Below are positions 1-64,000 of a stretch of 64,000 nucleotides of DNA, in pieces. Location of the stretch: sequence record OR844650.1; one strand, 5' to 3'. The notes under the pieces are model-generated. The model searched no databases. It was not told the DNA's origin and saw nothing but the letters and a program-made list of their open reading frames with translations. Both the position numbers and the translations under genes were made by a program. Position 1 is the stretch's first letter. Each line of letters begins with the position of its first letter.

Positions 1-44
1 ACACCAGTACAATAAATTTACTTGTTCAAATAATTTTTTTATAT

Positions 45-347
45 TCATAAAAATCTCACAGATTTAATATTACTGGTTACATGATTTACCCAAGTGTTAT
101 CGAACTTGTAAACAATTGTATTAAGTGATTTATGAAAATTAACCTCGCACACTAATGCCTTGGAACCATTGATTGTACAGACCGTGGATGGTAAGTTGTT
201 TGCTAATATCTCTTTTTCATCTAAACATAGTGAACTAATACAATCATAATAGAGAGGTTCAAGAACTTTTTCAGTACTGAGAAAGTCAAAAGAAAGATCA
301 TCTATTAGTTTTATGTAATCGAATAAATTATGATAATATTCATTCAT
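45..347 (-). CDS. hypothetical protein
   Basis: ORF in packed minus-strand run; start moved to MNEYY, which overlaps the upstream gene's end. Confidence 0.6.
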   Translation of the reverse strand: MNEYYHNLFDYIKLIDDLSFDFLSTEKVLEPLYYDCISSLCLDEKEILANNLPSTVCTINGSKALVCEVNFHKSLNTIVYKFDNTWVNHVTSNIKSVRFL

Positions 348-594
348 TGTAGATCCTTTTAAATTTAGCATTATTAGAATATGTATATGAATGACCAAAA
401 TCATTTACACCATGTACATTTAGTACACCGTCACTGAAATAAATTCGATCAATCGTGAGTTCACGTTTATAATCCCAATCATCATACCAGCACAGAACAC
501 GAATGCCTTTGTACTTTGTAGTTAAATCATTTTCTAATATAGTCAAGTAATCAATATGACTTTTGAATATCTCTAAGTCCTGCTCAAACATCAT
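340..594 (-). CDS. family C small protein
   Basis: N-terminal helix then TKYKGIRVLC. Confidence 0.7.
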   Translation of the reverse strand: MMFEQDLEIFKSHIDYLTILENDLTTKYKGIRVLCWYDDWDYKRELTIDRIYFSDGVLNVHGVNDFGHSYTYSNNAKFKRIYNE

Positions 595-851
595 TGTTCC
601 TCGTATAATTCTATATCATCAACTCCAACTTGGCGAATTGCAGTACTTCTGATGAATGTATTTTTTTCAAACAAACATACTGTTAAACGTATTTCACACT
701 TCAATGCACTGTAATAAATCATATCAATAACACCATATGTTTCATACATTTCTACGTATACATTTCGACCTAAGTACTTTTCTTCTAAATCAGTAATTAG
801 ACTATTGATAAGATTACCTATCTGTGTTATATCTGTGTGAAATTTATCCAT
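591..851 (-). CDS. family C small protein
   Basis: EEKYLGRNVYV. Confidence 0.7.
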   Translation of the reverse strand: MDKFHTDITQIGNLINSLITDLEEKYLGRNVYVEMYETYGVIDMIYYSALKCEIRLTVCLFEKNTFIRSTAIRQVGVDDIELYEEQ

Positions 852-1027
852 TATAATAAACCTCTCACATAAAACATTGATGAAAATAGATAATCATCAG
901 TACTGGAATTTAGTAGTTTATCAAAACTATAATTTTTATGCTTATTTTCATACAAAGACAATCTATAGTATCGTTCTATATTTTCTAAGTAGTCTTTTTG
1001 TAATAACATCTGTGTTGTTACATTCAC
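851..1027 (-). CDS. small hypothetical protein (58 aa, GTG start, not in ORF track)
   Basis: Read by hand; fills the gap exactly; TAA overlaps next ATG; AAGG upstream. Confidence 0.45.
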   Translation of the reverse strand: MNVTTQMLLQKDYLENIERYYRLSLYENKHKNYSFDKLLNSSTDDYLFSSMFYVRGLL

Positions 1028-1040
1028 TATAATGTACCTT

Positions 1041-1073
1041 AAAAGAAAAAGGGACCAATATATGATCCCTTTT
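1041..1073 (-). terminator. putative rho-independent terminator after pseT
   Basis: AAAGGGA..TCCCTTT stem followed by a T-run on the minus strand. Confidence 0.45.
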
Positions 1074-1076
1074 GTA

Positions 1077-2009
1077 TTAGAAATTTCCTTCAGCCACTTG
1101 GAAAACTTTCAACCCAAGTAGCTTACGCCACATGAATACAACTTGATCGCGGTCATCATATACCTTTTTAACATCGTAATGATCAACCACATTTTTCATG
1201 TACAGGTCGAATTTTACAACATCATCAGGACGTTTATCATCGATATCTCGCATAAACAATGCATCGTAAGGAACACCCCAATTCTTAAGCCACTGTTCGG
1301 TATCAGCACGACACCCTTCAGTACGCCCACTCATGACGATAATCTTGCGTTTATGAAAAACTGCTTCAGCGATAATAGACAAAATAACTTCTTCATCAGG
1401 TGTATCCTGAAGAACAGTACTTTCATCGTAAGGATTACGACCCCATTTATGAGCAAGAGTTCCATCGATATCAACGATGATAGCAGCTTCGCGTGAATTA
1501 CCATAGTAACCAATGTGTAATGCCTTACTATAATAGTACGTATCTGCCATTGTGTCAATGATATCATCTTGTACTGAACGCTCACGCTGGAGGTTATATT
1601 TCTTACAAAGTTTTACGAACTCTTTAATCTTAAAGAATTCATGAACATCTGCACCACGGTCTTCATTAGGTACAAAATCATCATAGAAGTTCTTTTCTTT
1701 GTAATCATAACCATTATCTTTAGCCCATACTTTCCAGAGATTACGGAAATGTTGTTTAAGGTTTGTATCGGATATGATGATGTTCCAACCATTCTCTGCT
1801 GCTGAATTTGCTGCACTGAACTGTAAATTAGTTACGTGCTGCTCATTAGCATCGTTGAATTTGTAAGCATCATGTGACCCAGCCATAGATTCACGAATAT
1901 CATCACGGTTGATGTTGATAGTCTTGGATTTGGCATTTTTAATTTCTTGAACTGCCCATGTGGTTTTACCACACCCAGGTAATCCAACTGTTAGTGTAAT
2001 AGTTGGCAT
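1077..2009 (-). CDS. pseT: polynucleotide 5'-kinase / 3'-phosphatase (T4 PNK family)
   Basis: P-loop GLPGCGKTT, INRDDIR, HAD motif DIDGT, SGR, C-terminal DDRDQVV..W..LGL.VFQVA.G.F; 310 aa. Confidence 0.95.
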   Translation of the reverse strand: MPTITLTVGLPGCGKTTWAVQEIKNAKSKTININRDDIRESMAGSHDAYKFNDANEQHVTNLQFSAANSAAENGWNIIISDTNLKQHFRNLWKVWAKDNGYDYKEKNFYDDFVPNEDRGADVHEFFKIKEFVKLCKKYNLQRERSVQDDIIDTMADTYYYSKALHIGYYGNSREAAIIVDIDGTLAHKWGRNPYDESTVLQDTPDEEVILSIIAEAVFHKRKIIVMSGRTEGCRADTEQWLKNWGVPYDALFMRDIDDKRPDDVVKFDLYMKNVVDHYDVKKVYDDRDQVVFMWRKLLGLKVFQVAEGNF

Positions 2010-2021
2010 TATTACTCCTTG

Positions 2022-11008: not shown

Positions 11009-11542
11009 TTATTTCCTCATGTATTTTATAACGTCTTCAAATAATTGTATTTTTAAGTCCTCGTCATTTCCAGGTAAAAACTCACGAAAACTATCAAAAT
11101 CTTCATTTTTTGCGAAGTTACGCATTTGTGTTGAGCTATATTGACTTACATTACGGTCAATACCTGCTTGAATTGCTTTTATACTACAAAAATTATACAA
11201 CTTACCATTGTACATGTCAAGAGTTTTTTGAAAAGAATCAATACGGTCAGAACCACATATGAAAAGAACATCTAAGTACTTTCCATCCAGTTCTCTCATT
11301 ATATCAAATAGATTGTCTTCTGTGTAGATGTTCTCTTGCACTGAAGGATAGAATCCCTCTGTATAATACATTTTTAGTTCAGGTGGGAGTGGGTTTTTTA
11401 TATTGTCAGTACTGGTGCTTAGATATATTTTTAAATCAGCATTGTACTGTTCTTTCAATTCCAATGCACTGTTGAATACAAACCCATGTCCATTATGTAT
11501 TGGGTTACATCTCATGAATGATAGTATACATGTTTCTTTCAT
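11009..11542 (-). CDS. HxGH-class nucleotidyltransferase (phage cytidylyltransferase-like)
   Basis: R.NPIHNGH, KNPL, GSDR, YNG, SSTQMR match the cytidylyltransferase-like family of T4-like phages. Confidence 0.8.
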   Translation of the reverse strand: MKETCILSFMRCNPIHNGHGFVFNSALELKEQYNADLKIYLSTSTDNIKNPLPPELKMYYTEGFYPSVQENIYTEDNLFDIMRELDGKYLDVLFICGSDRIDSFQKTLDMYNGKLYNFCSIKAIQAGIDRNVSQYSSTQMRNFAKNEDFDSFREFLPGNDEDLKIQLFEDVIKYMRK

Positions 11543-50060: not shown

Positions 50061-50061
50061 G

Positions 50062-52867: not shown

Positions 52868-52897
52868 AGGGACTCCCTTAAAATTAATATCAATCAT

Positions 52898-52925: not shown

Positions 52926-53022
52926 TAACATTTTATTCGTAATACCCCTTTATCGAAGTCGCTAAGGTTACCCGCCCTTTAGCCCCCTACGCATTTTGCC
53001 ATAGTCCAATCCCTTTTATTTC

Positions 53023-53088
53023 AAAAAAGTCAAGGGATTACCTATGCATTTTTTTAACGCATAATTTTAAAAACGCCTTGACTTTTTT
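53023..53088. repeat. 13-bp perfect inverted repeat at the module boundary
   Basis: AAAAAAGTCAAGG (53023-53035) / CCTTGACTTTTTT (53076-53088), inner TATGC/GCATA. Confidence 0.75.
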
Positions 53089-53116
53089 CTGAATCAGTAC
53101 TAGATCCCTTTACGCA

Positions 53117-53326
53117 TTAATCCTTCGTTACGCTAACGATTATCTGTGTATCCCCGTAGTCCTGCCATACTTCCACGCCATCGGTCGCCCTGGTTAGTCG
53201 TGCTGTCATCTGCTTAATGGTCTTAGGCTTTAGTGGAACCTGTTGCAGTACTGTACGCATAGCATCATTGACGTTATCATGTACGCCTGCAATAGTACCT
53301 AGAACGCTGTATACTGTATAGAACAT
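53117..53326 (-). CDS. early-region hypothetical protein
   Basis: AGGAGG RBS, GC hairpin AGGCCGC/GCGGCCT in the leader. Confidence 0.7.
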   Translation of the reverse strand: MFYTVYSVLGTIAGVHDNVNDAMRTVLQQVPLKPKTIKQMTARLTRATDGVEVWQDYGDTQIIVSVTKD

Positions 53327-53394
53327 ATGTATGCCCTCCTGATATAGTTAAGGCCGCTACAAGGCGGCCTATGATGTTTGGTGATGTGTAACGC

Positions 53395-53796
53395 TTACAG
53401 TCCTAAGATAGTGCGTGCTTCGTTACGTTCCGTACACAGCTGCATGATGTGAGCAAGTAAGTCCTTGCTAATGTATCCGGTGTTCATAGCTTCACGAATA
53501 GATACATCATAAGCACCGAACCCCGTGCGAACGATACGCACATCATTCAGGTTAGTATTATAGATACCGCCGAGATCAACGGCTTCGAATACTACATCAA
53601 CAGAATATTCATTGTTGCCATCGTGGAAGTTTTCCAGTGCAATAGTATTGGATACCGCCCAACGTTTGCAGTTTCCAATGATGCGGCACTGTTCCGGTTG
53701 GATAGTACCATTACTTACAGCGTACTCCAGTGCATCTTTACCGAAAGTCCGAGCCAGTACTAAAACGTCAGCGAAGGAATTGATTGAGAAGGTCAT
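53395..53796 (-). CDS. early-region hypothetical protein
   Basis: Start moved to MTFSIN, downstream of a promoter-stem-loop cassette. Confidence 0.75.
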   Translation of the reverse strand: MTFSINSFADVLVLARTFGKDALEYAVSNGTIQPEQCRIIGNCKRWAVSNTIALENFHDGNNEYSVDVVFEAVDLGGIYNTNLNDVRIVRTGFGAYDVSIREAMNTGYISKDLLAHIMQLCTERNEARTILGL

Positions 53797-53885
53797 GATA
53801 AAACTCCTTAATTTAGGAGGGAGAACCATTTCCCCCTCTCTATGTAAAACATTATACTTGATTCTAAGTACTATGCAAGTACTTT

Positions 53886-54218
53886 TTACATTTTAATACC
53901 TGGATTCAGATAGCGGTGAGAACCATATTCTGGATCGGTTTCGGTCCAGTACTGTAAATCGATAGTACCTTTCGCGTTAATCTTGTCTACCAGCTTATTC
54001 ATCTTAGCGTATACTACGTCAGCATCGATGCGTTTAAAGCCAGTAGCTTTAGTGAAGTAGTAGTGATTTGCTTCACTATCATTAAGGATATACCGAGCAC
54101 CGTTTGCAGTCTGTGCGATAATGATTGAGTATTCTACTTCCCGATCCAGACCGTCGATGAATACAGATGAAACATTGGTACGGATGAAAGCTTTAACGAT
54201 AGCGATTGAAGTACTCAT
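53886..54218 (-). CDS. early-region hypothetical protein
   Basis: AGGAG RBS, own promoter at ~54272-54300. Confidence 0.75.
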   Translation of the reverse strand: MSTSIAIVKAFIRTNVSSVFIDGLDREVEYSIIIAQTANGARYILNDSEANHYYFTKATGFKRIDADVVYAKMNKLVDKINAKGTIDLQYWTETDPEYGSHRYLNPGIKM

Positions 54219-54368
54219 TTTGAATCTCCTAACTTTGTGGGCCGTCGCACCATTGCCGCCCTACGAGATACATTATTGCAGTACTGATATACTTTGTCAA
54301 TACTTTTTTTATTAATAGTTTTCACCCCACCAGCAGATAGTTACTCACCGTTATTAACTATATATTTT

Positions 54369-54452
54369 AGATACACTCCTGCACCCAGTGGGCTAGTTTT
54401 TGTCTATGCGTATATAATAGCAAAGGGACTGACCGGAGTCAATCCCTTTTTT
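54369..54452. repeat. repeat element R2 copy 1 (type A)
   Basis: AGATACAC..GCACCC..TGGG..TATATAATAGCAAAGGGACTGACCGGAGTCAATCCCTTTT. Confidence 0.85.
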
Positions 54453-54464
54453 TATTCTTTTTTG

Positions 54465-54665
54465 TTAGATGATTCTCCAATCTTCTACGATCATGGTAAG
54501 ATAACGGACCATCGATTCAAGTGATTCGAATTCCCGATAGTCTGCCGCTCCACCAGCGGTACAAGTACAGCCGATTAAACCATTTTGTAATTCCTTAATC
54601 TGTACATCGATAAGGTTGGCTTTAGCTTCTTTCAGTACTTCAACCAGGGCGATAGCGATAGACAT
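54465..54665 (-). CDS. early-region hypothetical protein
   Basis: GGAG RBS after cassette. Confidence 0.7.
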   Translation of the reverse strand: MSIAIALVEVLKEAKANLIDVQIKELQNGLIGCTCTAGGAADYREFESLESMVRYLTMIVEDWRII

Positions 54666-54754
54666 AATGTTTTACTCCAAACTATTGACGGGAGAACTAT
54701 TCCCCCGCTCTATGTAAAACATTATACATTACTTGTTAGTACTGTCAAATAGTT

Positions 54755-55012
54755 TTATGAAATATCTTCGATGTAGTCGGCCCATTTCATTTTTTCAGTA
54801 CTGTCAATGGCTACCGGATTATTTGGATCAAACCATTCACCATTACCGCAGTACATACCAACGGCTACGGTTTTATAGCCATCCTGGGCCGTACTCCACG
54901 ACATTGCACGATAGATATGGCCTTTAACTGGTTGCAGTACTGGTAACGTTTTATGGTCTTCTACGTAGGCCATAGCTTGAGGATTTACCCGATATTGTGT
55001 GAATTGTTCCAT
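54755..55012 (-). CDS. early-region hypothetical protein
   Basis: AAGGG RBS, TTGACA promoter at ~55041-55069. Confidence 0.7.
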   Translation of the reverse strand: MEQFTQYRVNPQAMAYVEDHKTLPVLQPVKGHIYRAMSWSTAQDGYKTVAVGMYCGNGEWFDPNNPVAIDSTEKMKWADYIEDIS

Positions 55013-55088
55013 GATGTTTCCCCTTGTAGTTAGTAAAGTTATTACATCAGTACTATCAAGCTATGTCAATAGTACTGAAATAAAACTT

Positions 55089-55313
55089 TTAGATTAGATT
55101 ATTGATGCCGTTGATGGTAGACTCGCTTTCTTCTTTCTCCCATTGGCGGTAGTACTTCCATGCTTCATGATATGTGGCGATTAGTTCATCTTTTTGATCC
55201 TGAGTACATGCCAGTACTGAATCACGGTGAGCGGTGTTATAGATAGAATCGAATGATTTCTTCTCTTCTGCCAGGTTAGCTACTTCCCGCATCAGTTCAT
55301 CAAAGTTAGCCAT
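55089..55313 (-). CDS. early-region hypothetical protein (helical, acidic)
   Basis: AAGGAG RBS after cassette. Confidence 0.7.
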   Translation of the reverse strand: MANFDELMREVANLAEEKKSFDSIYNTAHRDSVLACTQDQKDELIATYHEAWKYYRQWEKEESESTINGINNLI

Positions 55314-55380
55314 TTTATTACTCCTTTTAGTGGGGGAGGATATCTCCCCCTATGCAAAACATTATACTTTGTTTTAGTTA

Positions 55381-55644
55381 TTATGCAAGTACTTTTTTCA
55401 TATAAAGATTATATTCTACACCGCCGTAACCTTCTACGATGATATGTTTTGCGTTATCACGTTTGCACATAGTGAAACCGTTGTTGATGTGTTCTGCATT
55501 TTCCAGGGCGACATCACCGATAGCGGCACATACGGCACTAATAACAGTATTCCGCAAAGTACTGGTATCATTAGCGGTCATAGTAGTTTGCAGTACTACG
55601 TTGTCGTATACGTGTGCATTGATAGTGATTTCGATAGTGTTCAT
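55381..55644 (-). CDS. early-region hypothetical protein
   Basis: AGGAG RBS after cassette. Confidence 0.7.
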   Translation of the reverse strand: MNTIEITINAHVYDNVVLQTTMTANDTSTLRNTVISAVCAAIGDVALENAEHINNGFTMCKRDNAKHIIVEGYGGVEYNLYMKKVLA

Positions 55645-55730
55645 GGTGTATCTCCTGGACTGGCGGGAGAACTATTCCCCCGCTCTATGTAAAACATTAT
55701 ACGTTAATCTAACTACAATGCAAGTACTTT

Positions 55731-55922
55731 TTAAATTTTATTTCCGATATAGTCCGGTCTATTCTTTTCGGTCATACGCTTTGCTAATGTTTGCATATGG
55801 CTTATTGCGTTTAATGTGTCTTCCTCCAGGGATGAATCAACATAATCAGGATCATTCTTCACCTTGCAATGATTATGATAGCGTAGTACTGCCAGTACTT
55901 TTTTAACTTCTTCTACTGTCAT
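55731..55922 (-). CDS. early-region hypothetical protein
   Basis: ATGA-coupled to the upstream gene. Confidence 0.65.
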   Translation of the reverse strand: MTVEEVKKVLAVLRYHNHCKVKNDPDYVDSSLEEDTLNAISHMQTLAKRMTEKNRPDYIGNKI

Positions 55923-56191
55923 AATAAGTACCCCACTTCGTTAGCTTTCAGGTTAGTATCAATCATCAGTGGATTTTTGTAGTTCACAAAACGATTAGTT
56001 TTCTCGATAGCGAATCCCATATAATCCAGCTTACTAACAGTACATTCATTCTTAAAAACTTCTTTCGCTGCATCGATGGCTGATTGCATGGATAACCGAC
56101 CATCTAAATTAATGTTTCCAAATGATCCACCAGCAGAAGTAGGATTACCGTTCATATCTTTAATGATCATAGTAGCGGAGTAGCTGGACAT
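55919..56191 (-). CDS. early-region hypothetical protein
   Basis: AAGG RBS after cassette. Confidence 0.7.
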   Translation of the reverse strand: MSSYSATMIIKDMNGNPTSAGGSFGNINLDGRLSMQSAIDAAKEVFKNECTVSKLDYMGFAIEKTNRFVNYKNPLMIDTNLKANEVGYLL

Positions 56192-56278
56192 AATTTTGTT
56201 TCCTTTTAGTATCGGGGAGAACTATTCTCCCCTTGATGTAAACTATTATACAGTACTGATATACTTTGTCAAATACTT

Positions 56279-56686
56279 TTATTCGCCCATATAGATTAGA
56301 TTATCATCGCCTACATAGGGATCGCAAACGTTGATTTCTTCGCAGTACTTAGTGAATACATCGCCATAGTGACCTAAACCACGATCCCAAAAACCAGTTC
56401 CGTGACCTTCGCGGGTAAGGAACAGATCATGACCAGCTTGCTCATAACCGTAATCAATAAACATACCGCGAACTACTTCCAGATCATTACCGTGTTTCTC
56501 AATGAAGCGAGAACATGCAATCACCGCCGCTTGACGTGCTTCATCAGATAACTCATAATCTTCCAGGTAATCGCCGTTATCATTATGTACAGTACTGAAT
56601 TGCATAGCTTCAATGTAAGCTACAACCATTGCAGCATGATTTTTATCGTTAGTGATGTTCCGAGCGAGATTAGTAGTAGTAGACAT
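56279..56686 (-). CDS. conserved phage hypothetical protein (GHDxxLTRxGHGxGFWDR motif)
   Basis: Motif recalled as widespread in phage early regions; function unknown. Confidence 0.7.
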   Translation of the reverse strand: MSTTTNLARNITNDKNHAAMVVAYIEAMQFSTVHNDNGDYLEDYELSDEARQAAVIACSRFIEKHGNDLEVVRGMFIDYGYEQAGHDLFLTREGHGTGFWDRGLGHYGDVFTKYCEEINVCDPYVGDDNLIYMGE

Positions 56687-56769
56687 GATTTTATTCCTTA
56701 TTGTATTGGGGAGAACTATTCTCCCCTTGATGTAAACTATTATACAGTACTGATATACTTTGTCAATAC

Positions 56770-56991
56770 TTAATTACGTTTAAAATGATATGTGCCTTTA
56801 TCATCCTGTACGCCCCACACTGATTTACCATCAACACCAGTGAAACCGGATTGTAATTCAATATGGAAACCATTATTATCAACTACAAAAACTTTTTTAT
56901 TTTCATCCCGATAACATTGATATTCTGAATCAACATTAAAGGCCGCATCATTCAGAAGATTGGAAGCGTAAATGCAAGTCATTGTAGTCAT
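56770..56991 (-). CDS. early-region hypothetical protein
   Basis: Start moved to MTTMTC after cassette. Confidence 0.7.
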   Translation of the reverse strand: MTTMTCIYASNLLNDAAFNVDSEYQCYRDENKKVFVVDNNGFHIELQSGFTGVDGKSVWGVQDDKGTYHFKRN

Positions 56992-57084
56992 GATTTTATT
57001 CCTTATTACCAGGGAGAACCATTTCCCCCTCTCTATGTAAAACATTATACTTGATTCTAAGTACAATGCAAGTACTTTTTATCA

Positions 57085-57204
57085 AATAGTTTTCAGTACT
57101 GAATACTTATATAATAGATACACTTCCGCACCCTATGGGTCAGTGAGTTATCTCTCAATGAATATATAATAGCAAAGGGACTGACCGGAGTCAATCCCTT
57201 TTTT
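57085..57204. repeat. repeat element R2 copy 2 (type B)
   Basis: AAATAGTTTTCAGTACT..AGATACAC..GCACCC..TCTCTCAATGAATATATAATAGCAAAGGGACTGACCGGAGTCAATCCC. Confidence 0.85.
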
Positions 57205-57212
57205 AATCTTTT

Positions 57213-57797
57213 TTATCGTGTTACCTTACTTGCTTCTACATCACGCTTTTTATAGTACTGATTCCAGATATTGCGGGTTAAACCGTAATCAAGTACTTTA
57301 ATAAGGCCGTTGCGATCCTGGCCGATATTCTGTTTTCTGATATCTCTTATCGTTAGTGTTGACAGTGTATCATCAACGTGTTGTAGTGCATCAGCAAAGC
57401 GGTGCTGGCGTTCAATTGCATTACGTTTAATATTGTACTTTAATTCGTTGCACGCGTTAACGTGCTTTACACTGCCTTTACTTGCAGTACTCAACCGATC
57501 CATAACGATAAACATATTATCAGGATCGCATAAATGCATATGCACCTTTGCAAAGTACTGTTTCAATTGAGGGCGGTCATAGTCTAAAAAATTCCATACC
57601 TTACATTCAGTTTCATTTTGTTCTACACCCGCATCACAATTGGCGACCTTAATCACTAACCGATCATTTAAAGCGAATACAATACGGGAAGAACCCGCAC
57701 CGATGATCTCCAGACCAGCTAACCGACAAGCTGAAAGGATCTCTTTGTTGGTTTCCATTTCTGACAGGGTACGGATGAATTTAGTATAATTACGCAT
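57213..57797 (-). CDS. minimal protein-kinase-fold protein (putative Ser/Thr kinase)
   Basis: GAGSSR loop, VIK Lys, EQNETE helix C, DIRKQN catalytic loop, LDYG; start moved to MRNYT after AAGGAG. Confidence 0.75.
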   Translation of the reverse strand: MRNYTKFIRTLSEMETNKEILSACRLAGLEIIGAGSSRIVFALNDRLVIKVANCDAGVEQNETECKVWNFLDYDRPQLKQYFAKVHMHLCDPDNMFIVMDRLSTASKGSVKHVNACNELKYNIKRNAIERQHRFADALQHVDDTLSTLTIRDIRKQNIGQDRNGLIKVLDYGLTRNIWNQYYKKRDVEASKVTR

Positions 57798-57828
57798 TGC
57801 ATGTTCTCCTTGAGTTAATGAAACTATC

Positions 57829-58071
57829 TTACAGTACTTTACTATCAATGGCAACCACTTTTTTCACACTAACCGCGTGAATCACTTCCTTAGTGTTTTT
57901 AGTACTGAATACTTTCGCTGTTCCTTGTTCTACTGCAATGCGATAACGACCGTTAACATCAACCATATTAATAAAGTCCGGTGTACTAAACCGAGTAGTA
58001 CGGCATTTCAGTACTGTTAACAGTTCCACCAGCGATGTAGTTTCTTTGATACGTTTTTCTAAAGTAATCAT
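57829..58071 (-). CDS. early-region hypothetical protein
   Basis: Start moved to MITLEK; promoter TTGACA-17-TACTAT. Confidence 0.65.
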   Translation of the reverse strand: MITLEKRIKETTSLVELLTVLKCRTTRFSTPDFINMVDVNGRYRIAVEQGTAKVFSTKNTKEVIHAVSVKKVVAIDSKVL

Positions 58072-58128
58072 TTTGTTTTCCCCGTGTTGGTATGTACATA
58101 TAGTACTAAAACATTTGAGTACTGTCAA

Positions 58129-58347
58129 TTAGATAATTGCATATTTCTTTAAAGATAATGCGTCTTGGGTTGGCTGATACTCAATGCCGTTACCGTTATC
58201 TACTTTAACTAATAAACCTTTGTCAATTAGTTTTTTAATAGTCCTTTGGCCTTGTTGAAAATTGGTAAAATGTGAATCATTACGAAAGGTATAACCGTGC
58301 TTAACTGCTTCATCAATAGTTTTCTTTTCGATTTTAGATAATTTCAT
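58129..58347 (-). CDS. small hypothetical protein (possible winged-helix)
   Basis: RTIKKLIDKGLLVK; start moved to MKLSK; promoter TTGACA-17-TATTAT. Confidence 0.65.
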   Translation of the reverse strand: MKLSKIEKKTIDEAVKHGYTFRNDSHFTNFQQGQRTIKKLIDKGLLVKVDNGNGIEYQPTQDALSLKKYAII

Positions 58348-58400
58348 TTTGTTTCTCCCGTGTTGGTATGTGTACATAATACTAAAACAATTGAGTACTG

Positions 58401-58655
58401 TCAACGTGATATTAGTTTTATTTTCTTATTATATTGTTGATGTTCATAAAGGTTTATCTTTCCTGTGTTCTCTATTACTATTCTGTTGTTAGTGTCTACA
58501 TCGATTACACGCAGTTTTCCGTTGCTTAACTTCCTTGGTAATAGGTTACCATTAATAAACTCATTAGCAAGCTGTACGGCCTTTGTGATGATTCTCTGTG
58601 GTGCTTTATAGTGTACCCGCAAGATATTATCTTTAGATAGTTGTACCTTAATCAT
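58401..58655 (-). CDS. small basic hypothetical protein
   Basis: AGGA RBS. Confidence 0.65.
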   Translation of the reverse strand: MIKVQLSKDNILRVHYKAPQRIITKAVQLANEFINGNLLPRKLSNGKLRVIDVDTNNRIVIENTGKINLYEHQQYNKKIKLISR

Positions 58656-58670
58656 TTTAGTTTATCCTAT

Positions 58671-58695
58671 AAAAAAGGCGGGAACTGATCCCGCC
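58671..58695 (-). terminator. rho-independent terminator
   Basis: GGCGGGA-ACTGA-TCCCGCC plus T6 on the minus strand. Confidence 0.75.
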
Positions 58696-58717
58696 GTGTT
58701 GTTAGTACTGCAAGTTA

Positions 58718-59113
58718 TTAGATAACCTGGCGGCGTTTACTGTATACTGTTACACGATTACCCTTACGGTCGTGTCGGATCTCTTTCTGGTTGCGAACCA
58801 GTTCACTTGGACGCTTAAGGTTTGCCAGGTGATCCGCGTGAGTCCAAGCGGTATGGTTTGTCTGTACTTTGATATCAGAATCAGCGATAAATTCATCTTG
58901 TGCGTTAAGTACTGCCGCCAGTAAATCCGCTCGTTTTAGTTCTGCTGCTGTTAGTACTGGCTCCGGTGAATTCACGATATCAGAGATTTCTTTGAACTGT
59001 ACGGCCCAGCGTTGACCTTTCGGTGCATCTTTGCCCATGTCTTTAAATGCTGCTCCTTCCTCGCGTGCAACAATACGGGCAGCTTCACGGGTAGCGTAGA
59101 ATTTAGTAATCAT
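58718..59113 (-). CDS. early-region hypothetical protein
   Basis: Promoter TTGACA-17-TATAAT at 59158-59186. Confidence 0.75.
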   Translation of the reverse strand: MITKFYATREAARIVAREEGAAFKDMGKDAPKGQRWAVQFKEISDIVNSPEPVLTAAELKRADLLAAVLNAQDEFIADSDIKVQTNHTAWTHADHLANLKRPSELVRNQKEIRHDRKGNRVTVYSKRRQVI

Positions 59114-59208
59114 GGTATACATCCTATTAGTTGAGTTAGTACTACAAGTTAGAGTCTATTATAAAGTACTATCTGGGCAATGTCAAATAGTACTTTAAAT
59201 GGATTCTA

Positions 59209-59532
59209 TTACATGTCTTTCTTACGTTTTACATCGTAGTAGCGAACTGTTATTTCTTTGTTAATCTCTTTTTCGATGCGGTGAATAACTTTTTCTTTCG
59301 GGTTGAAACCTATAACGGTTTCTTTAATGATCTCCAAGCCCGTGTATTCTCCTTGTGTACCGTAACCGTAAGTAAAGGTTTCATGTCCCAAGTCTTCCCA
59401 GCGGTCGCCAATTAACGCGGACACGTAGCAAGAGTGGTAAGTGTTACCGTTCCGATCAGTCCAGCGATTAACTTTAATGTCAAAGGAGGTTACAATTTTC
59501 AGTTCTACTTTCTGGGTAAGGATCATAGCCAT
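59209..59532 (-). CDS. early-region hypothetical protein
   Basis: After cassette. Confidence 0.7.
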   Translation of the reverse strand: MAMILTQKVELKIVTSFDIKVNRWTDRNGNTYHSCYVSALIGDRWEDLGHETFTYGYGTQGEYTGLEIIKETVIGFNPKEKVIHRIEKEINKEITVRYYDVKRKKDM

Positions 59533-59619
59533 TTTTATTTCTCTCTCTTTGTTAGGAGGGGAACCATTCCCCTCGCTTGATGTAAACTATTATACAGTAC
59601 TAAGATACTTTGTCAATAC

Positions 59620-59802
59620 TTATTTTTTGGAAAGTTTACGCATTAATTCTACGCTTTCTTGTGAACGTTTTGCTACCTGGCAAGCTGTATGGGCAGTAAA
59701 CATTTTTGTATAGTCTGACGCTTTGCCACCAAACCGAGCGGCACGTTCACGGGCACTTGGAACTAATACTATTTCTTTCTTGCAGATAGTGCACTTAGCC
59801 AT
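59620..59802 (-). CDS. small Cys/His protein (CxxC...HxxC)
   Basis: CTIC and HTAC; after cassette. Confidence 0.7.
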   Translation of the reverse strand: MAKCTICKKEIVLVPSARERAARFGGKASDYTKMFTAHTACQVAKRSQESVELMRKLSKK

Positions 59803-59889
59803 TTTAATTTCTCTCTTTTAGTTAGGAGGGGAACCATTTCCCCGCCTTGATGTAAACTATTATACAGTACTAAGATACTTTGTCAATAC

Positions 59890-60165
59890 TTAAGTATTGT
59901 AAATGTCGTGAATAGTGATAAAGTTTTTACGCCCGTAAACCTGTAAATCGGTATTAATGTAGTGCTTATCAAGTACATCCTCGACGCTTAACGCGGTGTC
60001 GTGAATATCTTCGTAGAATTGGGGATCTACAATCTTGCTTAAGTCATCCGGCGTTAACTTATCGTTAAGCCATTGAACCGCCTGGATATCTGCATCACGT
60101 TTCCATTGTTCCAGGTTAGTAGTCAGTACTTGCTCGATTTCGTTAGCTGTCAGTAGAATCCGCAT
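59890..60165 (-). CDS. early-region hypothetical protein
   Basis: AAGG RBS; promoter at 60199-60226. Confidence 0.7.
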   Translation of the reverse strand: MRILLTANEIEQVLTTNLEQWKRDADIQAVQWLNDKLTPDDLSKIVDPQFYEDIHDTALSVEDVLDKHYINTDLQVYGRKNFITIHDIYNT

Positions 60166-60233
60166 TTTAATGTTTCCTTATCAGTGGTTGATGTAAGTAT
60201 TATACTCGTTTACTTTCTATTGTCAAACTATTT

Positions 60234-60309
60234 TATCAGGGGAGTTTTTCGTATGTCTTACTCCTGGACTACTTAACGGGGTTACTTGTTTCGTTCCCCG
60301 TCCTGATGT
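60234..60309 (-). ncRNA. candidate ~75-nt three-way-junction sRNA
   Basis: Own promoter (TTGCAT-16-TATAAT at 60315-60342); ATCAGG/CCTGAT closes CGGGG/CCCCG and GGAGT/ACTCC stems; no start codon. Confidence 0.45.
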
Positions 60310-60354
60310 AAAACATTATACTTGATTCTAAGTACAATGCAAGTACTTTTTAAA

Positions 60355-60470
60355 AATAGTTTTCAGTACTAGCCACCAGCAAACAATAGATACATTTATG
60401 CACCCTGTGGGCTGATTTGTTTCTATGCGTATATAATAGCAAAGGGACTGACTGGAGTCAATCCCTTTTT
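60355..60470. repeat. repeat element R2 copy 3 (type A)
   Basis: Same core; ACTGACTGGAGTCAATCCC variant. Confidence 0.85.
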
Positions 60471-60479
60471 CAAATATTT

Positions 60480-60629
60480 TTAAACTTCTTTCGGGTTGCG
60501 ATAGGTGATAGCGTTCGGGTACATTTGTTTAATGTTATTCCATGCCTGGTTAACATTATAACCACTTGAGCGAATCAGTTGGTTACTACCGACACCTTGA
60601 AACACTACTTCGAATAAGAATTCTTTCAT
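60480..60629 (-). CDS. small hypothetical protein (49 aa, not in ORF track)
   Basis: MKEFLFEVVFQGVGSNQLIRSSGYNVNQAWNNIKQMYPNAITYRNPKEV; GAGG RBS; ATGA overlap. Confidence 0.55.
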   Translation of the reverse strand: MKEFLFEVVFQGVGSNQLIRSSGYNVNQAWNNIKQMYPNAITYRNPKEV

Positions 60630-60799
60630 GCTTTCACCTCGCTATCTGCTTTACCTTTACGCCAGGACATTACTAATTGTTCGCGTTGCCATAAGTCGAG
60701 TGATACAAAAAGTTTTGCGGTATCACTTTTAGGATACTCGCCATTAGTACCTAACCGATAAAATAGATCTTTCAGTACTGATAATTCTACTTGGATCAT
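60626..60799 (-). CDS. small hypothetical protein
   Basis: Start moved to MIQVEL after cassette. Confidence 0.65.
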   Translation of the reverse strand: MIQVELSVLKDLFYRLGTNGEYPKSDTAKLFVSLDLWQREQLVMSWRKGKADSEVKA

Positions 60800-60885
60800 T
60801 ATACTTTCCTTTTTGTTAGGAGGGGAACTATTCCCCTCTCGATATAAAACATTATACACTTTATTCAGTACTGTGCAAGTACTTT

Positions 60886-61098
60886 TTAATCTTTCAGCCA
60901 ATGATCTTGGATGAATTTTTCACCGAAGCCTTGCTGCATGGATTGTAACAGTCGTTCACGGTGAGCGGCGGCAAATTGCTCAGTACTATGCGTTACACCT
61001 GGTTGATAACGTGATTCACCATTGGGGGCGATGTATTGTACATCCCACGGTTTAGCGTTAGTATCAGACCATTTACGAACGATTAGTTGACCTTGCAT
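60886..61098 (-). CDS. small hypothetical protein
   Basis: Start moved to MQGQL after cassette. Confidence 0.65.
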   Translation of the reverse strand: MQGQLIVRKWSDTNAKPWDVQYIAPNGESRYQPGVTHSTEQFAAAHRERLLQSMQQGFGEKFIQDHWLKD

Positions 61099-61185
61099 TT
61101 TTCTTTCCTCAGTACTGGGGAGAATCATTTCTCCCCTTCATGTAACTTATTATACAGTACTATAATCTATTGTCCAGTACTTTTT

Positions 61186-61374
61186 TTACAGTTTATGAAT
61201 CAATTCTTTATCTAAGCGATAGCGTACATTATTAATGGTAACAGCATTATTTTTAATGCTACGCTGTACTGGCCCACCAGCAATAACAAACGTTGCCTTA
61301 TTACCCCGAACAATAATAGCACTTCCTGGATTGCTGTATTCATCTTGTACTAAAATACTTGATAAGTTTTCCAT
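61186..61374 (-). CDS. small hypothetical protein
   Basis: GAGG RBS after cassette. Confidence 0.65.
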   Translation of the reverse strand: MENLSSILVQDEYSNPGSAIIVRGNKATFVIAGGPVQRSIKNNAVTINNVRYRLDKELIHKL

Positions 61375-61455
61375 TTTTATTTCCTCTTAGTAGGGGAAGA
61401 CGTTTCCCCTTGATGCAATACAGTATACACTATCTTTCAGTACTTTCAATACTTT

Positions 61456-61713
61456 TTATCTCATAGATCTATGCCAACAATTACGCGGATCTCTTTTAAA
61501 AGTACTATCATGATCCTCCTGGCAAGTTATGCAGTACTTACATCCCTTAACAGCCTGGCGGCGATTCTCAGGGATTTTATCGCCACAGTCGAGGCAATGT
61601 ATCAGTGATTCTATTTGTGCGTTAATTTGCTTTCTAGCGTGGTTTACGGCGGCCTGAATCACTGCGTTAATCTCGTCTTGTTCGGCCCCGTCTTTCGCGA
61701 ATCCGACAGCCAT
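61456..61713 (-). CDS. TraR/DksA-family C4 zinc-finger protein (YbiI / lambda Orf73-like)
   Basis: MAxGFAxDGAEQDEI N-terminus; CLDCGDKIPENRRQAVKGCKYCITCQ. Confidence 0.88.
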   Translation of the reverse strand: MAVGFAKDGAEQDEINAVIQAAVNHARKQINAQIESLIHCLDCGDKIPENRRQAVKGCKYCITCQEDHDSTFKRDPRNCWHRSMR

Positions 61714-61910
61714 TATTTTAACCTTTTTCTATCATTAATTAATGCTTTCAGTACTATACTAATAACTTGCAATGATTCATCAATAACTATAAAATTATTT
61801 TCTTTCATTAGATGATAGTTACCATTGATATTATATTCTAACGAGTACTGTTTACGTTTAATTTTTGATAATGTTTCTATTTGTTTTTGTACTGATTTCA
61901 TGCTAATCAT
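61713..61910 (-). CDS. small hypothetical protein
   Basis: Packed ORF. Confidence 0.6.
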   Translation of the reverse strand: MISMKSVQKQIETLSKIKRKQYSLEYNINGNYHLMKENNFIVIDESLQVISIVLKALINDRKRLK

Positions 61911-62015
61911 TGGTAAACGTCCTGTAACGCATTCTAACGAGATAAACGGTTGAGTACTGACATTGTATAGGGTAATGAATTAAAGCCCACCAGCGTTAAC
62001 CAGTGGGCTATAATC

Positions 62016-62159
62016 TTACATCTTGCGGATAATCTTAACAGTATCTTTCACCGATTTACCGTCTTGCTGGCATTGCTCGATCATTGCGTATTGTTCTGCG
62101 GTCAGATCCTCGCCAGTTTTTGCCAGTACTGCGTCGATGAATGAATCCAGTGCGATCAT
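62016..62159 (-). CDS. small hypothetical protein (47 aa, not in ORF track)
   Basis: MIALDSFIDAVLAKTGEDLTAEQYAMIEQCQQDGKSVKDTVKIIRKM; promoter at 62204-62231. Confidence 0.55.
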   Translation of the reverse strand: MIALDSFIDAVLAKTGEDLTAEQYAMIEQCQQDGKSVKDTVKIIRKM

Positions 62160-62521
62160 TTTATTTCTCTCTTAGGTTAAGTTAACTACTGTTGATAAAA
62201 CTTATTATACAGTACTATCAAACGTTGTCAATATCTTTAATAGTACTGGTAATATATTTTAGCGGTAATCGTCGTATGCTTTATTCACCTGGCGAATGTA
62301 ACTTTCAAAGGCTTCGTCTACCGTTTCATACTCCCGAACATAATCACCATAGGAAACTACATACATACCTTTTTGATCTTCAAACGTCATGATGATAGAA
62401 TCCAGACCAACGATTTCAGTTTTTGCGATGATAGCCATTTTTTAATTCCTTAGTAGTGTAGTTGATAAAAGTTATTATGTCAGTACTATCAAACTATGTC
62501 AATAGTACTGTGATAATATTT

Positions 62522-62734
62522 TTAGTTAATGATAGTCAGTGTAAAATTGTAATCACCGCAGCGATATAGCACGTTATTCCCAAATGTTCCAACTAATCGC
62601 ACATCACACAAAACGCCGGTTTTTTCTTTTACTTCCTTGATACTTGTAACTCCTGTAATATCTTTATTAAAGTATTCATGATCTGAAAATAAAACTTGTT
62701 TTGCATTTTTTAATTTCGACCGGATATTAGCCAT
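62522..62734 (-). CDS. small hypothetical protein
   Basis: After cassette. Confidence 0.65.
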   Translation of the reverse strand: MANIRSKLKNAKQVLFSDHEYFNKDITGVTSIKEVKEKTGVLCDVRLVGTFGNNVLYRCGDYNFTLTIIN

Positions 62735-62830
62735 TTTGTTTTCTCTCTCTGTTAGTGGGGAGAACTATTCTCCCCTTGATGTAAACTATTATACAGTACT
62801 ATAATCTATTGTCAAACTATTTTTTTTATA

Positions 62831-63172
62831 TTATTCGAAATCTTCTGGACCGGACTGATAATCATCTTCACCGTATGCACTTTCTAACCGCTCGCCAGTG
62901 TGATCATCAGTTAGTGAGTCATCCTCATAGTTCACGTTCACGCCCGTGATGTAAAACTGGCTATCGTCTGGATCATTGAAATTAATTTTTTGGATGTTTA
63001 CAATAACTGTATTGATACCCAGGACACCGCCATCAGCCGTTACAAAGTACTGATATTTTTCGCAACCGCCTGAATTGAAACCGTAATTAATTTCGGCCCG
63101 ACCATCATTTAAACGCAGTGCCTGGGCGATGATTTCATTTTCAAAGTTAGATTGAGCAATTGAGATAGTCAT
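62831..63172 (-). CDS. acidic hypothetical protein
   Basis: AAGG RBS after cassette. Confidence 0.7.
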   Translation of the reverse strand: MTISIAQSNFENEIIAQALRLNDGRAEINYGFNSGGCEKYQYFVTADGGVLGINTVIVNIQKINFNDPDDSQFYITGVNVNYEDDSLTDDHTGERLESAYGEDDYQSGPEDFE

Positions 63173-63254
63173 GATTTGTTTCCTTATTATCAGGGGAAAC
63201 CGTTTCCCCTTTCGATGTAAAACATTATACGCTTATCAGGAAGTAATGCAAGTA

Positions 63255-63722
63255 CTATTTCACGTTAATTTCAAAGTACTGCTCTTTGATGTTTTCCTGT
63301 TGGTAAATCTCGTTTAATGCTTTAAGATCTAAAACCTGTTTACCTGCTGCCTGAATATACTTTTTAAGAGTCGCTAACAGCTTCTCAGGCGTGTTTGTAG
63401 TCTTACGTGTTGGGATCTTATCGTGCCCCATAGCGTAGTACTGCTTACGTGCTATAGTACTGATAACACTGCGGTACGGTTCCATGATCAGCTTGTCTGT
63501 GTATTCGTCGCTATCCCCAAACTTCATACCGTGGATCGCAAAGGTCATCATCATGCGGTCGTTATCGCGGATATTGTGGGGGCAGTCGGCAAGCTCGCGA
63601 GTCAGTGACATAGTGATCCCCACGTCGCCACCCAGCGGTAAAGGTCGGGCGATAAAGAAACCGTTAGGGAATACTTTCAGGAAGTTTTCTTGAACTGCTG
63701 CGACGAATTCGATGCTATTCAT
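63255..63722 (-). CDS. early-region hypothetical protein
   Basis: AAGG RBS after cassette. Confidence 0.75.
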   Translation of the reverse strand: MNSIEFVAAVQENFLKVFPNGFFIARPLPLGGDVGITMSLTRELADCPHNIRDNDRMMMTFAIHGMKFGDSDEYTDKLIMEPYRSVISTIARKQYYAMGHDKIPTRKTTNTPEKLLATLKKYIQAAGKQVLDLKALNEIYQQENIKEQYFEINVK

Positions 63723-63825
63723 AATTCATTTCCTTAATTAGTGGGGGAAGTTGTTTCCCCTCTCGATGTAAAACATTATACGCCAATTGAGATAGTTTGC
63801 AAGTACTTTCTACAAATACTATTAA

Positions 63826-63945
63826 AATAGTTTTCAGTACTCAATACTCATATAATAGATACACTTATGCACCCTGTGGGCTAGTGAGCTATCTCTCAAT
63901 GAATATATAATAGCAAAATGGCTGACCGGAGTCAACCACTTTTTT
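63826..63945. repeat. repeat element R2 copy 4 (type B)
   Basis: Same core; hairpin variant AAAATGGCTGACCGGAGTCAACCACTTTT. Confidence 0.85.
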
Positions 63946-64000
63946 CATTTATTTTTAGCTTTTAGAATCGCCGCCTTTCGTGTCATGCCTTGTTTGATGT

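Follow-up and report, generated by a model that had tools for sequence, protein, structure and literature searches.

The 64,000-nucleotide stretch that we analysed (the window) comes from an Asteriusvirus, a jumbo coliphage of the 121Q/PBECO4/G17 group, and has a GC content of 33.5%, close to the ~32% guessed in an initial annotation of this DNA. Most genes in jumbo phages of this kind lack an assigned function (83% in phAPEC6). The window carries an array of the palindromic hexamer AGTACT, two blocks that lack it, the beginning of the terminal repeat and two genes with recognizable domains that bear on its interpretation:

1–64000, no strand: array of 224 copies of AGTACT, the hexamer at the centre of the palindromic 8-mer CAGTACTG, spread over every reading frame and non-coding DNA.
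12321–12842, minus strand: predicted N6-adenine DNA methyltransferase of the Dam family (PF05869); the window encodes no other candidate 'writer'.
37451–45664, minus strand: block A, a stretch of 8,213 bp whose plus strand lacks AGT; its roughly 20 small genes remained without an assigned function in PHROG and Pfam scans.
45665–48096, minus strand: AGTACT-dense segment between blocks A and B, with 17 sites (7 per kb) and 94.7% identity to phage TH47.
48097–53096, minus strand: block B, 5 kb that lack AGTACT and in which GTAC is not enriched.
52965–64000, minus strand: start of a direct terminal repeat of ~21 kb, the immediate-early region, which ends at coordinate 74239 if the window's numbering is continued.
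58404–58655, minus strand: protein of 83 amino acids with a ParE-like toxin domain, within the immediate-early terminal repeat.

Base composition predicts 21.4 AGTACT sites in the window, and the observed 224 exceed this about tenfold. The initial annotation had put the number within the first 6 kb at 21 (~2 expected), which is exact, and had called TGTACT and AGTACA also common, as they are (n = 114, 4.6-fold, and n = 40, 2.2-fold, respectively). Enrichment is nested, rising from GTAC through WGTACW and AGTACT to CAGTACTG, which occurs 47 times with 0.6 copies expected; among well-populated 6-mers, the highest observed/expected ratios belong to GTACTG (n = 147) and CAGTAC (n = 126). Markov models of order 1, 2 and 3 predict 17.3, 41.5 and 86.3 sites, and the fourth-order expectation is as high as 189, since the signal is shared by the 5-mers AGTAC and GTACT. 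That figure, with much of the excess already present in 5-mers, would suit a neutral by-product of mutation or repair bias, of codon or dinucleotide usage, or of copied promoter cassettes and paralogues, and some sites are indeed repeated by promoter cassettes and paralogous genes. The codon-shuffle null, however, fails by 20 standard deviations: shuffling synonymous codons within genes yielded 57.3 ± 6.2 sites (maximum of 77 in 300 shuffles) compared with 185 observed (z = 20.6), and permuting codons yielded 22.7. The excess thus persists under the Markov and codon-preserving nulls that had been proposed as a check, with amino acid sequence and codon usage held fixed.

The word is read in different frames and also lies outside genes, as first reported: 184 coding sites fall into the three frames as 79, 48 and 57, and 38 sites are non-coding, a ratio of ~5:1, although density is higher in intergenic DNA (5.6 per kb) than in coding DNA (3.2 per kb). 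Ser-Thr is spelled AGT-ACT 79 times (19.5 expected), and AGTACT spells X-Val-Leu 58 times (11 expected) and [KQE]-Tyr-X 45 times (12 expected). Synonymous choice at peptides able to encode the word is skewed four- to fivefold, and, as dipeptides, Ser-Thr and Val-Leu are in turn enriched 1.7–2 times. A neutral origin sits poorly with sites that lie in unique sequence and in all three frames, with only 38 of the 224 outside genes, and with one-mismatch neighbours that are not depleted, contrary to what a drive would predict.

Comparison with TH47 (86% identical) shows that AGTACT is under purifying selection, including at silent codon positions. The word is kept in place at 167 of 205 sites (81%), compared with 53% for control hexamers. 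Third-codon identity is 91.7% inside sites and 77.9% outside, such that synonymous positions change 2.7 times less often within the word, and in non-coding DNA 217 of 218 positions inside sites are identical, compared with 87% outside. Across genera, at 48% amino acid identity, 9.9 kb holds 37 versus 32 sites, maintaining density, and eight of these share a common position where 0.12 would be expected. The flanking bases mirror each other: C, A, T and G occur 107, 53, 50 and 14 times on the 5′ side, and G, T, A and C occur 98, 57, 46 and 23 times on the 3′ side. We searched for information beyond one base on either side of AGTACT and found none. Because the flanks are strand-symmetric, the constraint acts on duplex DNA; the DNA-level constraint first proposed is thereby borne out by the codon-preserving null, by synonymous and non-coding conservation and by symmetry on both strands. 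Codon shuffling, synonymous conservation and the two conserved blocks of the same genome that escape enrichment rule against the neutral reading, which we regard as largely refuted and highly improbable.

In the terminal repeat, every one of the small genes has its own strong σ70 promoter, and AGTACT occurs at 6–7 sites per kb. Position 1 of the G17 record corresponds to window position 52965, and the G17 repeat 1–20668 recurs at 350150–370817. The phage also concentrates true Chi sites in this repeat. Two promoter classes incorporate the word:

62788–62815, minus strand: perfect TTGACA-16-TATAAT promoter whose spacer contains AGTACT at 62795 (AGTACT-G-TATAAT).
62204–62231, 59859–59886, 59589–59616, 59158–59186, 56739–56766, 56245–56272 and 61149–61176, minus strand: AGTACT-G-TATAAT promoters of the same layout.
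53878–53883, minus strand: AAAAAGTAC-TTGCAT promoter class, with the site straddling the upstream boundary of the −35 box; found at 53878, 55723, 57071, 60342 and 63802.

AGTACT is present in 10 of the 11 best σ70 promoters of the terminal repeat, in eight of them as AGTACT-G-TATAAT. Its position is either about −19 to −14, where it immediately precedes TATAAT, or the upstream border of the −35 box, which it adjoins or overlaps. The matching layout AGTAC-TTGACA-N9/10-AGTACT-G-TATAAT is present in a RaK2-like Klebsiella phage, and the fixed core-promoter positions described at the outset are therefore not only confirmed but kept across phage genera. Spacing between sites is approximately exponential (coefficient of variation of 0.84–1.03 away from gaps) with a slight surplus at 20–23 bp; a search for quasi-periodic spacing or cooperative phasing revealed only the promoter pairs 20–23 bp apart.

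In ~285 kb sampled from the phage genome, AGTACT occurs in several hundred copies, mostly within genes. Its density was initially described as similar throughout, which does not hold: it ranges from 1.8 per kb mid-genome to 7–8 per kb around the terminal repeat, with 3.5 per kb in the adjoining early region, and falls to zero at 37378–45664 and 48097–53096. Block B is a tandem array of small paralogous genes adjoining the terminal-repeat boundary. Block A has no AGT on its plus strand and hence no ACT on its coding strand, where 168 would be expected. Coding-strand C-AGTACA-G (45 copies) takes the place of the iterated word there, and the ACT-free state is conserved in G17 and TH47. To our knowledge, block A is the cleanest case of a multi-gene region purged of one trinucleotide on one strand, and a nuclease or some other strand-specific reader that recognizes three nucleotides would be predicted from it. 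The ParE toxin family is related to RelE-type RNases, and the ParE-like protein at 58404–58655 is a candidate, though a speculative one, for the nuclease avoided by block A.

These patterns also bear on whether the signal is one of RNA, with AGUACU in mRNA acting as a nuclease or binding site that sets transcript lifetime. Under this reading AGUACU would be most abundant in immediate-early transcripts and missing from both site-free blocks. Site density tracks the probable expression class: the terminal repeat has 7 per kb, the early region next to it 3.5 and the middle of the genome 1.8. The constraint on block A is strand-specific and concerns ACT, half of the word; enterobacterial MazF/PemK toxins cleave U^ACU; and a gene with a ParE-like domain sits in the immediate-early region. 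An RNA signal, however, needs neither a perfect palindrome nor strand-symmetric flanks, sites in promoters precede the start of transcription, non-coding sites are as conserved as stated above (217 of 218 positions), and enrichment is similar where genes occupy the other strand. We consider an RNA signal very unlikely.

Lytic phages are textbook palindrome avoiders. This genome lacks GCGC and many 6-bp palindromes, and the enrichment of AGTACT therefore runs counter to its general trend; under a test for restriction-site avoidance the word is not under-represented but ten times enriched. The enrichment is common to RaK2-like and GAP32 phages (Asteriusvirus, Alcyoneusvirus and Mimasvirus) and co-occurs with the total absence of GCGC, of which ~350 kb of phage DNA holds no copy compared with 6.8 per kb in the host. 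Among the relatives compared, it is limited to phages of Enterobacterales (Escherichia coli, Klebsiella and Cronobacter); PA5oct (0 versus 6.1 expected) and XacN1 (0 versus 2.9) lack it and show the usual avoidance of palindromes. A 50-kb sample of E. coli K-12 contains three sites where 11.6 are expected. Compared with this sample, the phage has the word at ~55 times the density, and the word could thus serve as a mark of self. We know of no modified bases and no phage nucleus in jumbo phages of this group.

Restriction of the trait to Enterobacterales phages, and its absence from Pseudomonas and Xanthomonas relatives, would also be expected if the word recruited or titrated a conserved enterobacterial protein, such as the TetR-type SlmA or a type IIA topoisomerase. 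Immediate-early promoters must act before any phage protein exists, the phage accumulates another host signal, Chi, the SlmA site GTGAGTACTCAC is centred on AGTACT, and infection by the relative Sharanji makes cells filamentous. The type IIA topoisomerase would be one that prefers A^GNNC^T; the older gyrase consensus GRYC mismatches GTAC. SlmA, for its part, requires G, T, purine, A and G at positions 1–5, and we rejected AGTACT as SlmA-binding sites: 285 kb of phage DNA contains no full 12-bp site, and the position before the core, unlike that of the SlmA site, favours C (2.64-fold) and avoids G (0.47-fold). The host itself under-uses the word, as the K-12 sample shows. A host factor is, on balance, improbable.

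The initial annotation had likened AGTACT to the cyanobacterial palindrome HIP1 and tied it to a methyltransferase. As a description the comparison stands, given the codon-preserving null and the conserved sites, whereas the link to a methyltransferase writer is unsupported. If a phage enzyme, for example the Dam-family protein at 12321–12842, methylated AGTACT or the nested GTAC, the word might persist because it lets early promoters be regulated epigenetically (parental versus newly replicated DNA) or marks self. The short, sharp palindrome and its nested enrichment resemble HIP1 with nested methylase sites (PMC4390886). The AGTACT-rich clade encodes methyltransferases, whereas the PA5oct paper mentions none, and the Dam-family gene has a syntenic orthologue in RaK2 (62.6% identical). 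The RaK2 paper, however, reports CpG methylation by bisulfite treatment, and AGTACT contains no CpG; its authors interpreted the restriction patterns as methylation of known types, Dam being one example (data not shown), and nothing in the RaK2 data points to AGTACT. We looked for a signature of VSP-type repair in the depletion of deaminated variants of AGTACT and did not find it (observed/expected of 1.06 for AGTATT and 1.53 for AATACT). PF05869 is widespread in other phages such as HK97, Stx phages and small Klebsiella siphoviruses, a comparison of family occurrence alone, and the sequence of the enzyme does not reveal its specificity. We therefore regard methylation as unlikely, if worth keeping in view.

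From the enrichment, selection, symmetry, promoter placement and spread documented above, we infer a protein that reads AGTACT. We tentatively favour, at somewhat less than an even chance, a phage-encoded symmetric DNA-binding reader for which the word is both an early-promoter operator and a genome-wide mark of self. AGTACT, the core of CAGTACTG, would be a duplex recognition word maintained by selection in enterobacterial RaK2-like jumbo phages, and its reader, either synthesized by the phage or delivered with the virion, a protein that binds DNA sequence-specifically and with two-fold symmetry. At immediate-early σ70 promoters, where the palindrome holds a fixed core position (10 of 11 top promoters) that a RaK2-like phage shares, it would act as an operator that switches early transcription; elsewhere it would be held at 2–8 copies per kb as a density-selected mark distinguishing phage from host DNA. 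A Pfam search of the 148 window proteins for sequence-specific DNA-binding domains recognized only a DksA/TraR zinc finger. A sharp word of 6–8 bp with no flank information looks more like the site of an enzyme (methyltransferase, nuclease or topoisomerase) than an operator of 12–20 bp. A promoter repressor explains neither the ~5:1 coding majority (184 versus 38 sites) nor the site-free 5-kb early block, and the nearly random spacing of sites outside the promoter pairs also speaks against this reading.

A broader scheme, which we think quite unlikely, is that RaK2-like enterobacterial jumbo phages use a three-layer, sequence-based code of self and non-self in place of base modification. In the first layer, the positive word CAGTACTG may be read on phage DNA; in the second, GCGC may be forbidden and left for a phage nuclease or terminator acting on host DNA. 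In the third, found in Asteriusvirus, the 8.2-kb early block may have been recoded without ACU such that its transcripts, or a displaced strand, survive a nuclease of three-nucleotide specificity, possibly the ParE-like-domain protein. 'Single-protein production' uses MazF with ACA-less mRNAs, and this third layer would be a natural version of that trick.

A tenfold-enriched palindrome stands out against the rule of avoidance that lytic phages, and nearly all of this genome, otherwise follow. Silent-site conservation, dipeptide bias, presence in three genera and placement in immediate-early promoters together imply a reader with a genome-wide role, which would act in well-known jumbo phages that are therapeutic candidates. 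AGTACT thus offers a handle on how these phages separate their own DNA from that of the host and time their early genes.

Several known systems share parts of this pattern. In T5, the pre-early genes lie within a long direct terminal repeat and are driven by strong promoters of the host type, and we know of no report of an iterated palindrome in T5. The T5 first-step-transfer region resembles the terminal repeat of this phage in its early genes and promoters; CBB likewise has promoters on its terminal repeat. Phage-repressor operators (λ CI/Cro, P22 Arc and LexA boxes over −35/−10) are also palindromes fixed in strong promoters, with pairs about two helical turns apart, but the phage word has only 6–8 informative bp and is mostly intragenic. 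Chi (GCTGGTGG), DNA uptake sequences and KOPS similarly distinguish DNAs by the density of a short word; they are asymmetric and orientation-dependent, whereas AGTACT is symmetric. The E. coli SlmA site shares the central hexamer but needs GT-purine flanks, which the phage word lacks and partly avoids. HIP1 sites at orthologous positions show turnover. Like the phage word, HIP1 (GCGATCGC) is an 8-bp palindrome over-represented 10–100 times in all frames and in non-coding DNA, with selection at orthologous positions (PMC5861425 and PMC4390886), an influence on codon choice and an unsettled function. Unlike HIP1, the phage word is AT-rich, is carried by a clade of lytic phages rather than by a cell, has no evident cognate methyltransferase and no periodicity, and occupies fixed places within σ70 promoters.

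The palindrome AGTACT occurs 224 times in the window, against 21.4 expected from composition; the initial annotation, which had called it highly iterated, put the tally for the opening 6 kb at 21, which proved exact. Markov models of orders 1–3 gave expectations of 17, 41 and 86, and the fourth-order expectation is high (189) because the 5-mers AGTAC and GTACT hold the same excess. GTACTG and CAGTAC have the top observed-to-expected ratios among well-populated hexamers, and the octamer CAGTACTG, which has AGTACT as its core, is present in 47 copies versus 0.6 expected. The base 5' of the site is C, A, T or G in 107, 53, 50 and 14 cases, and the base 3' is G, T, A or C in 98, 57, 46 and 23; the flanks are mirror-symmetric between strands and carry no information past the C/G at ±1. 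This pattern is what one would expect if a partner with two-fold symmetry reads the duplex; for an RNA signal it would be unnecessary.

The window matched OR844650.1 and OR845138.1 (two records, both without annotation, of an Escherichia phage of 351,992 bp) at 100%, and G17, Sharanji, 121Q, slurp01 and phAPEC6 at 95–99% identity; these belong to the genus Asteriusvirus, jumbo myoviruses that are kin of Klebsiella phage RaK2. The G17 annotation places all genes of this region, nearly all small and hypothetical, on the minus strand, and genes were therefore called on that strand only, using a simple longest-ORF scheme (162 calls, 89.5% coding). AGTACT is denser outside genes (5.6 per kb) than inside (3.2 per kb), uses all three frames (79, 48 and 57 sites) and showed no strong gradient in its placement within genes. 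The initial annotation had allowed that the enrichment might vanish under a null that preserves amino-acid sequence and codon usage. It did not: shuffling synonymous codons within genes left 57.3±6.2 sites (maximum 77 in 300 shuffles) and permuting codons left 22.7, versus 185 observed. Ser-Thr is spelled AGT-ACT in 79 of 143 cases (19.5 expected), X-Val-Leu is spelled nnA-GTA-CTn 58 times (11 expected) and [KQE]-Tyr-X is spelled nAG-TAC-Tnn 45 times (12 expected). Ser-Thr and Val-Leu are also 1.7–2 times over-represented as dipeptides, and the pressure for AGTACT therefore extends into protein sequence. An artefact of repeats or cassettes was rejected, as it accounts solely for sites in promoters and for a few in paralogues.

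Sites are also conserved, including at synonymous positions. In an alignment with TH47 that spans 57 kb at 86% identity, 167 of 205 sites are preserved in place; the corresponding rates are 52.6% among all hexamers and 52.9% among composition-matched words. Third-codon-position identity is 91.7% in AGTACT sites versus 77.9% outside them, and in non-coding DNA 217 of 218 positions within sites are identical versus 87% outside. At greater distance, in a Klebsiella phage of the RaK2 type (mean amino-acid identity 48% over 23 orthologues), density is kept across the orthologues (37 versus 32 sites in 9.9 kb) and eight sites share their position, with 0.12 expected by chance; selection therefore holds the density of AGTACT and, in part, its position.

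Comparison of observed and expected counts in relatives showed the excess in TH47, the RaK2-like phage and GAP32, and none in PA5oct or XacN1.

AGTACT and GCGC in sampled stretches of related phages (observed / expected for AGTACT)
TH47 (E. coli), 85 kb: AGTACT 337 / 28.5; GCGC 0
RaK2-like (Klebsiella), 50 kb: AGTACT 179 / 16.5; GCGC 0
GAP32 (Cronobacter), 25 kb: AGTACT 53 / 8.4; GCGC 0
PA5oct (Pseudomonas), 20 kb: AGTACT 0 / 6.1; GCGC normal (14 / 17)
XacN1 (Xanthomonas), 15 kb: AGTACT 0 / 2.9; GCGC present (28 / 51)

Among the phages sampled, AGTACT excess and GCGC absence thus co-occur in the enterobacterial branch only. GCGC is missing from the window (49 expected) and from 200 kb of the genome (178 expected); 50 kb sampled from E. 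coli K-12 contain 342 GCGC and 3 AGTACT (11.6 expected). The absence of GCGC may be a sign of a phage nuclease aimed at GCGC in host DNA. Many 6-bp palindromes are absent as well, among them AGGCCT, CCATGG, CGTACG, CTCGAG, CTGCAG and GAGCTC.

Whole-genome statistics cover ~285 kb of this genome's 352 kb. The excess extends across the genome, with counts per 50 kb of 245, 143, 87 and 90 where 17 are expected. Density is 6–8 per kb in and just past the direct terminal repeat, 2.5–4 further out and 1.8 mid-genome. The G17 record carries this repeat, 20.7 kb long, at both ends; its left boundary, the physical genome end in G17, corresponds to window position 52965 and its far end to window-like coordinate 74239.

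In an 11-kb part of the repeat we found nine perfect TTGACA-16/17-TATAAT promoters, and AGTACT is present in 10 of the 11 best promoters of the repeat. The initial annotation had placed the word at fixed promoter positions, and this was borne out: eight promoters share the layout AGTACT-G-TATAAT, with the word at about -19 to -14, and a second class reads AAAAAGTAC-TTGCAT. In a third, AGTACT flanks the -35 box on both sides, 22 bp apart. Eleven promoters in the first 8.5 kb of the stretch sampled from the RaK2-like phage are built in the same way, the majority as AGTAC-TTGACA-N9/10-AGTACT-G-TATAAT. Since promoter sites precede the transcription start, the word acts on DNA at least there. An RNA-level signal is very improbable, with both these untranscribed sites and the palindromic symmetry against it. 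Spacing between sites is approximately exponential with a slight excess at 20–23 bp, and a search for periodicity or helical phasing yielded nothing besides promoter pairs 20–23 bp apart.

Conserved stem-loops of the type GGGGAGAAnnnTTCTCCCC lie 3' of early promoters at 53–64 kb in the window (for example after 62795, 59866 and 56746); they overlap the GGAG-type ribosome-binding region and are situated where immediate-early transcripts probably have their 5' ends. The stem of a further hairpin element, AAAGGGATTGACTCCGGTCAGTCCCTTT followed by GCTATTATAT, encloses a TTGACT -35 box; a TATTAT -10 box follows directly, and the element is present in four copies:
54422–54449, minus strand, hairpin element
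57174–57201, minus strand, hairpin element
60441–60468, minus strand, hairpin element
63915–63942, minus strand, hairpin element

The terminal repeat also contains true E. coli Chi sites (GCTGGTGG), ~90 times enriched by an estimate from composition:
54327, 54550, 56127, 58026, 60373, 61274 and 61987, minus strand, Chi in the window
66615 and 73643, minus strand, Chi past the window
66677 and 73655, plus strand, Chi past the window
On our own reading of Chi orientation, the nine sites that point the same way would block RecBCD entry at the repeat's left end; at 584 bp from its right end there is one copy in the correct orientation. This use of Chi by the phage, together with the host range of the trait, is suggestive of a host factor that recognises AGTACT, a reading that we nevertheless consider distinctly unlikely. 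SlmA, the sole concrete candidate, shares the central hexamer but requires flanks that are absent here. Hijacking of SlmA was rejected, these flanks being partly avoided, and the members of the AGTACT array are not SlmA sites.

Two blocks are free of sites:
37451–45664 (8,213 bp), block A, no ACT on the coding (minus) strand
48097–53096, minus strand, block B, no AGTACT

Block B adjoins the repeat, whose left boundary lies 131 bp ahead of the first AGTACT after this gap, and is a tandem array of ~23 paralogous genes of 65–100 codons. The paralogues share a conserved GCT GTA CTG (Ala-Val-Leu) motif, which holds the few GTAC copies of the block; no GTAC enrichment was found there, and the TH47 counterpart contains no AGTACT.

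The plus strand of block A has no AGT (168 expected), and the coding strand therefore lacks ACT. The block starts in or just after gene 45579–45896, and its end lies 45 nt inside the gene starting at 37498. None of its 111 Thr codons is ACT, versus 42% elsewhere, and usage of Leu CTN and of NAC codons departs in the same direction. The iterated word is retained as C-AGTACA-G, the palindrome with its last T exchanged, in 45 coding-strand copies (15 times expectation). Three overlapping copies of this variant, (AGTAC)3-A, stand at 41263–41278 (minus strand), and two-copy forms at 38445–38455 and 42578–42588. Despite ~15% divergence the desert is retained over 7.6 kb in G17 and 7.0 kb in TH47, and it is unique in ~300 kb sampled, where the next-longest ACT gap is 532 bp; the RaK2-like genome lacks it in its syntenic part. 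A second constraint, specific to one strand, is thus superimposed in block A on that for AGTACT. Origin of the word as a neutral by-product is largely excluded by these conserved site-free blocks, the codon-shuffle null and third-codon-position conservation.

Block A proteins have no Pfam domain and match only PHROGs of unknown function. The most natural idea for the block is that a nuclease recognising 3 nucleotides would act on RNA or on a displaced single strand. MazF/PemK toxins of enterobacteria that cut U^ACU are known, and the immediate-early repeat encodes a ParE-like toxin-domain protein of 83 aa (58404–58655, minus strand; PF24732, E-value 6e-11), for which no sequence relatives were found in the PDB; a tie between either and block A would be speculation. 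The downstream gene 58132–58404 overlaps the ParE-like gene by one base and could be its partner. A second, weaker word desert covers both blocks: plus-strand ACCG (coding-strand CGGT) is absent over 11.9 kb, 38872–50726, with ~21 expected. Non-coding DNA at the downstream edge of block A (37540–37720, minus strand) holds the G/C-rich element ACCCCGCCCCCGCAACG, odd for an AT-rich genome, and the Sharanji record starts near this edge, at about 37009.

The initial annotation proposed a methyltransferase-linked mark in the manner of HIP1, the iterated palindrome of cyanobacteria. Methylation would fit a nested, enzyme-like word, but we regard it as unlikely: the VSP signature is not present, the methyltransferase family of the window is common among other phages, and the RaK2 data point to CpG methylation and, as their authors read them, to known methylation types such as Dam. 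In the search for a C5-methyltransferase gene, a back-translated PCQ motif matched too often, and a motif scan of 200 kb of the genome found no such ORF; the RaK2 paper in any case suggests CpG as the specificity. Directly downstream of the Dam-family methyltransferase gene, on its left in window coordinates, lies a 261-aa ORF with CapR and DUF723 domains (11539–12324, minus strand), which looks like a mobile insertion because G17 is without it. A VSP-type repair drive was rejected, as deamination variants are not depleted.

We tentatively favour, as quite possible though short of probable, a symmetric DNA-binding reader: a two-fold symmetric protein, made by the phage or carried in the virion, that would recognise AGTACT on duplex DNA. 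Duplex symmetry, operator-like promoter placement conserved across genera, density-type selection and a 55-fold contrast with the host sample are consistent with such a reader. Against it, typical operators are longer and less sharp than this word, and Pfam searches of 148 window proteins found no candidate.

The AGTACT signal is real, strong and conserved, and it appears to be unreported, no earlier account of the motif in phages having been found in the searchable literature. It constitutes an iterated palindrome carried by a lytic phage clade, the reader hypothesis for it can be tested, and the array unexpectedly encloses a gene block free of one trinucleotide. Among known phenomena HIP1 comes closest: its repair-drive signature and periodicity have no match in AGTACT, but hyper-abundance, palindromy and selection hold for both. 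As for the methyltransferases linked to HIP1, the Dam-family enzyme of the window is a candidate counterpart. Relative to restriction-site avoidance, AGTACT is the opposite, in a genome that itself avoids many other palindromes.
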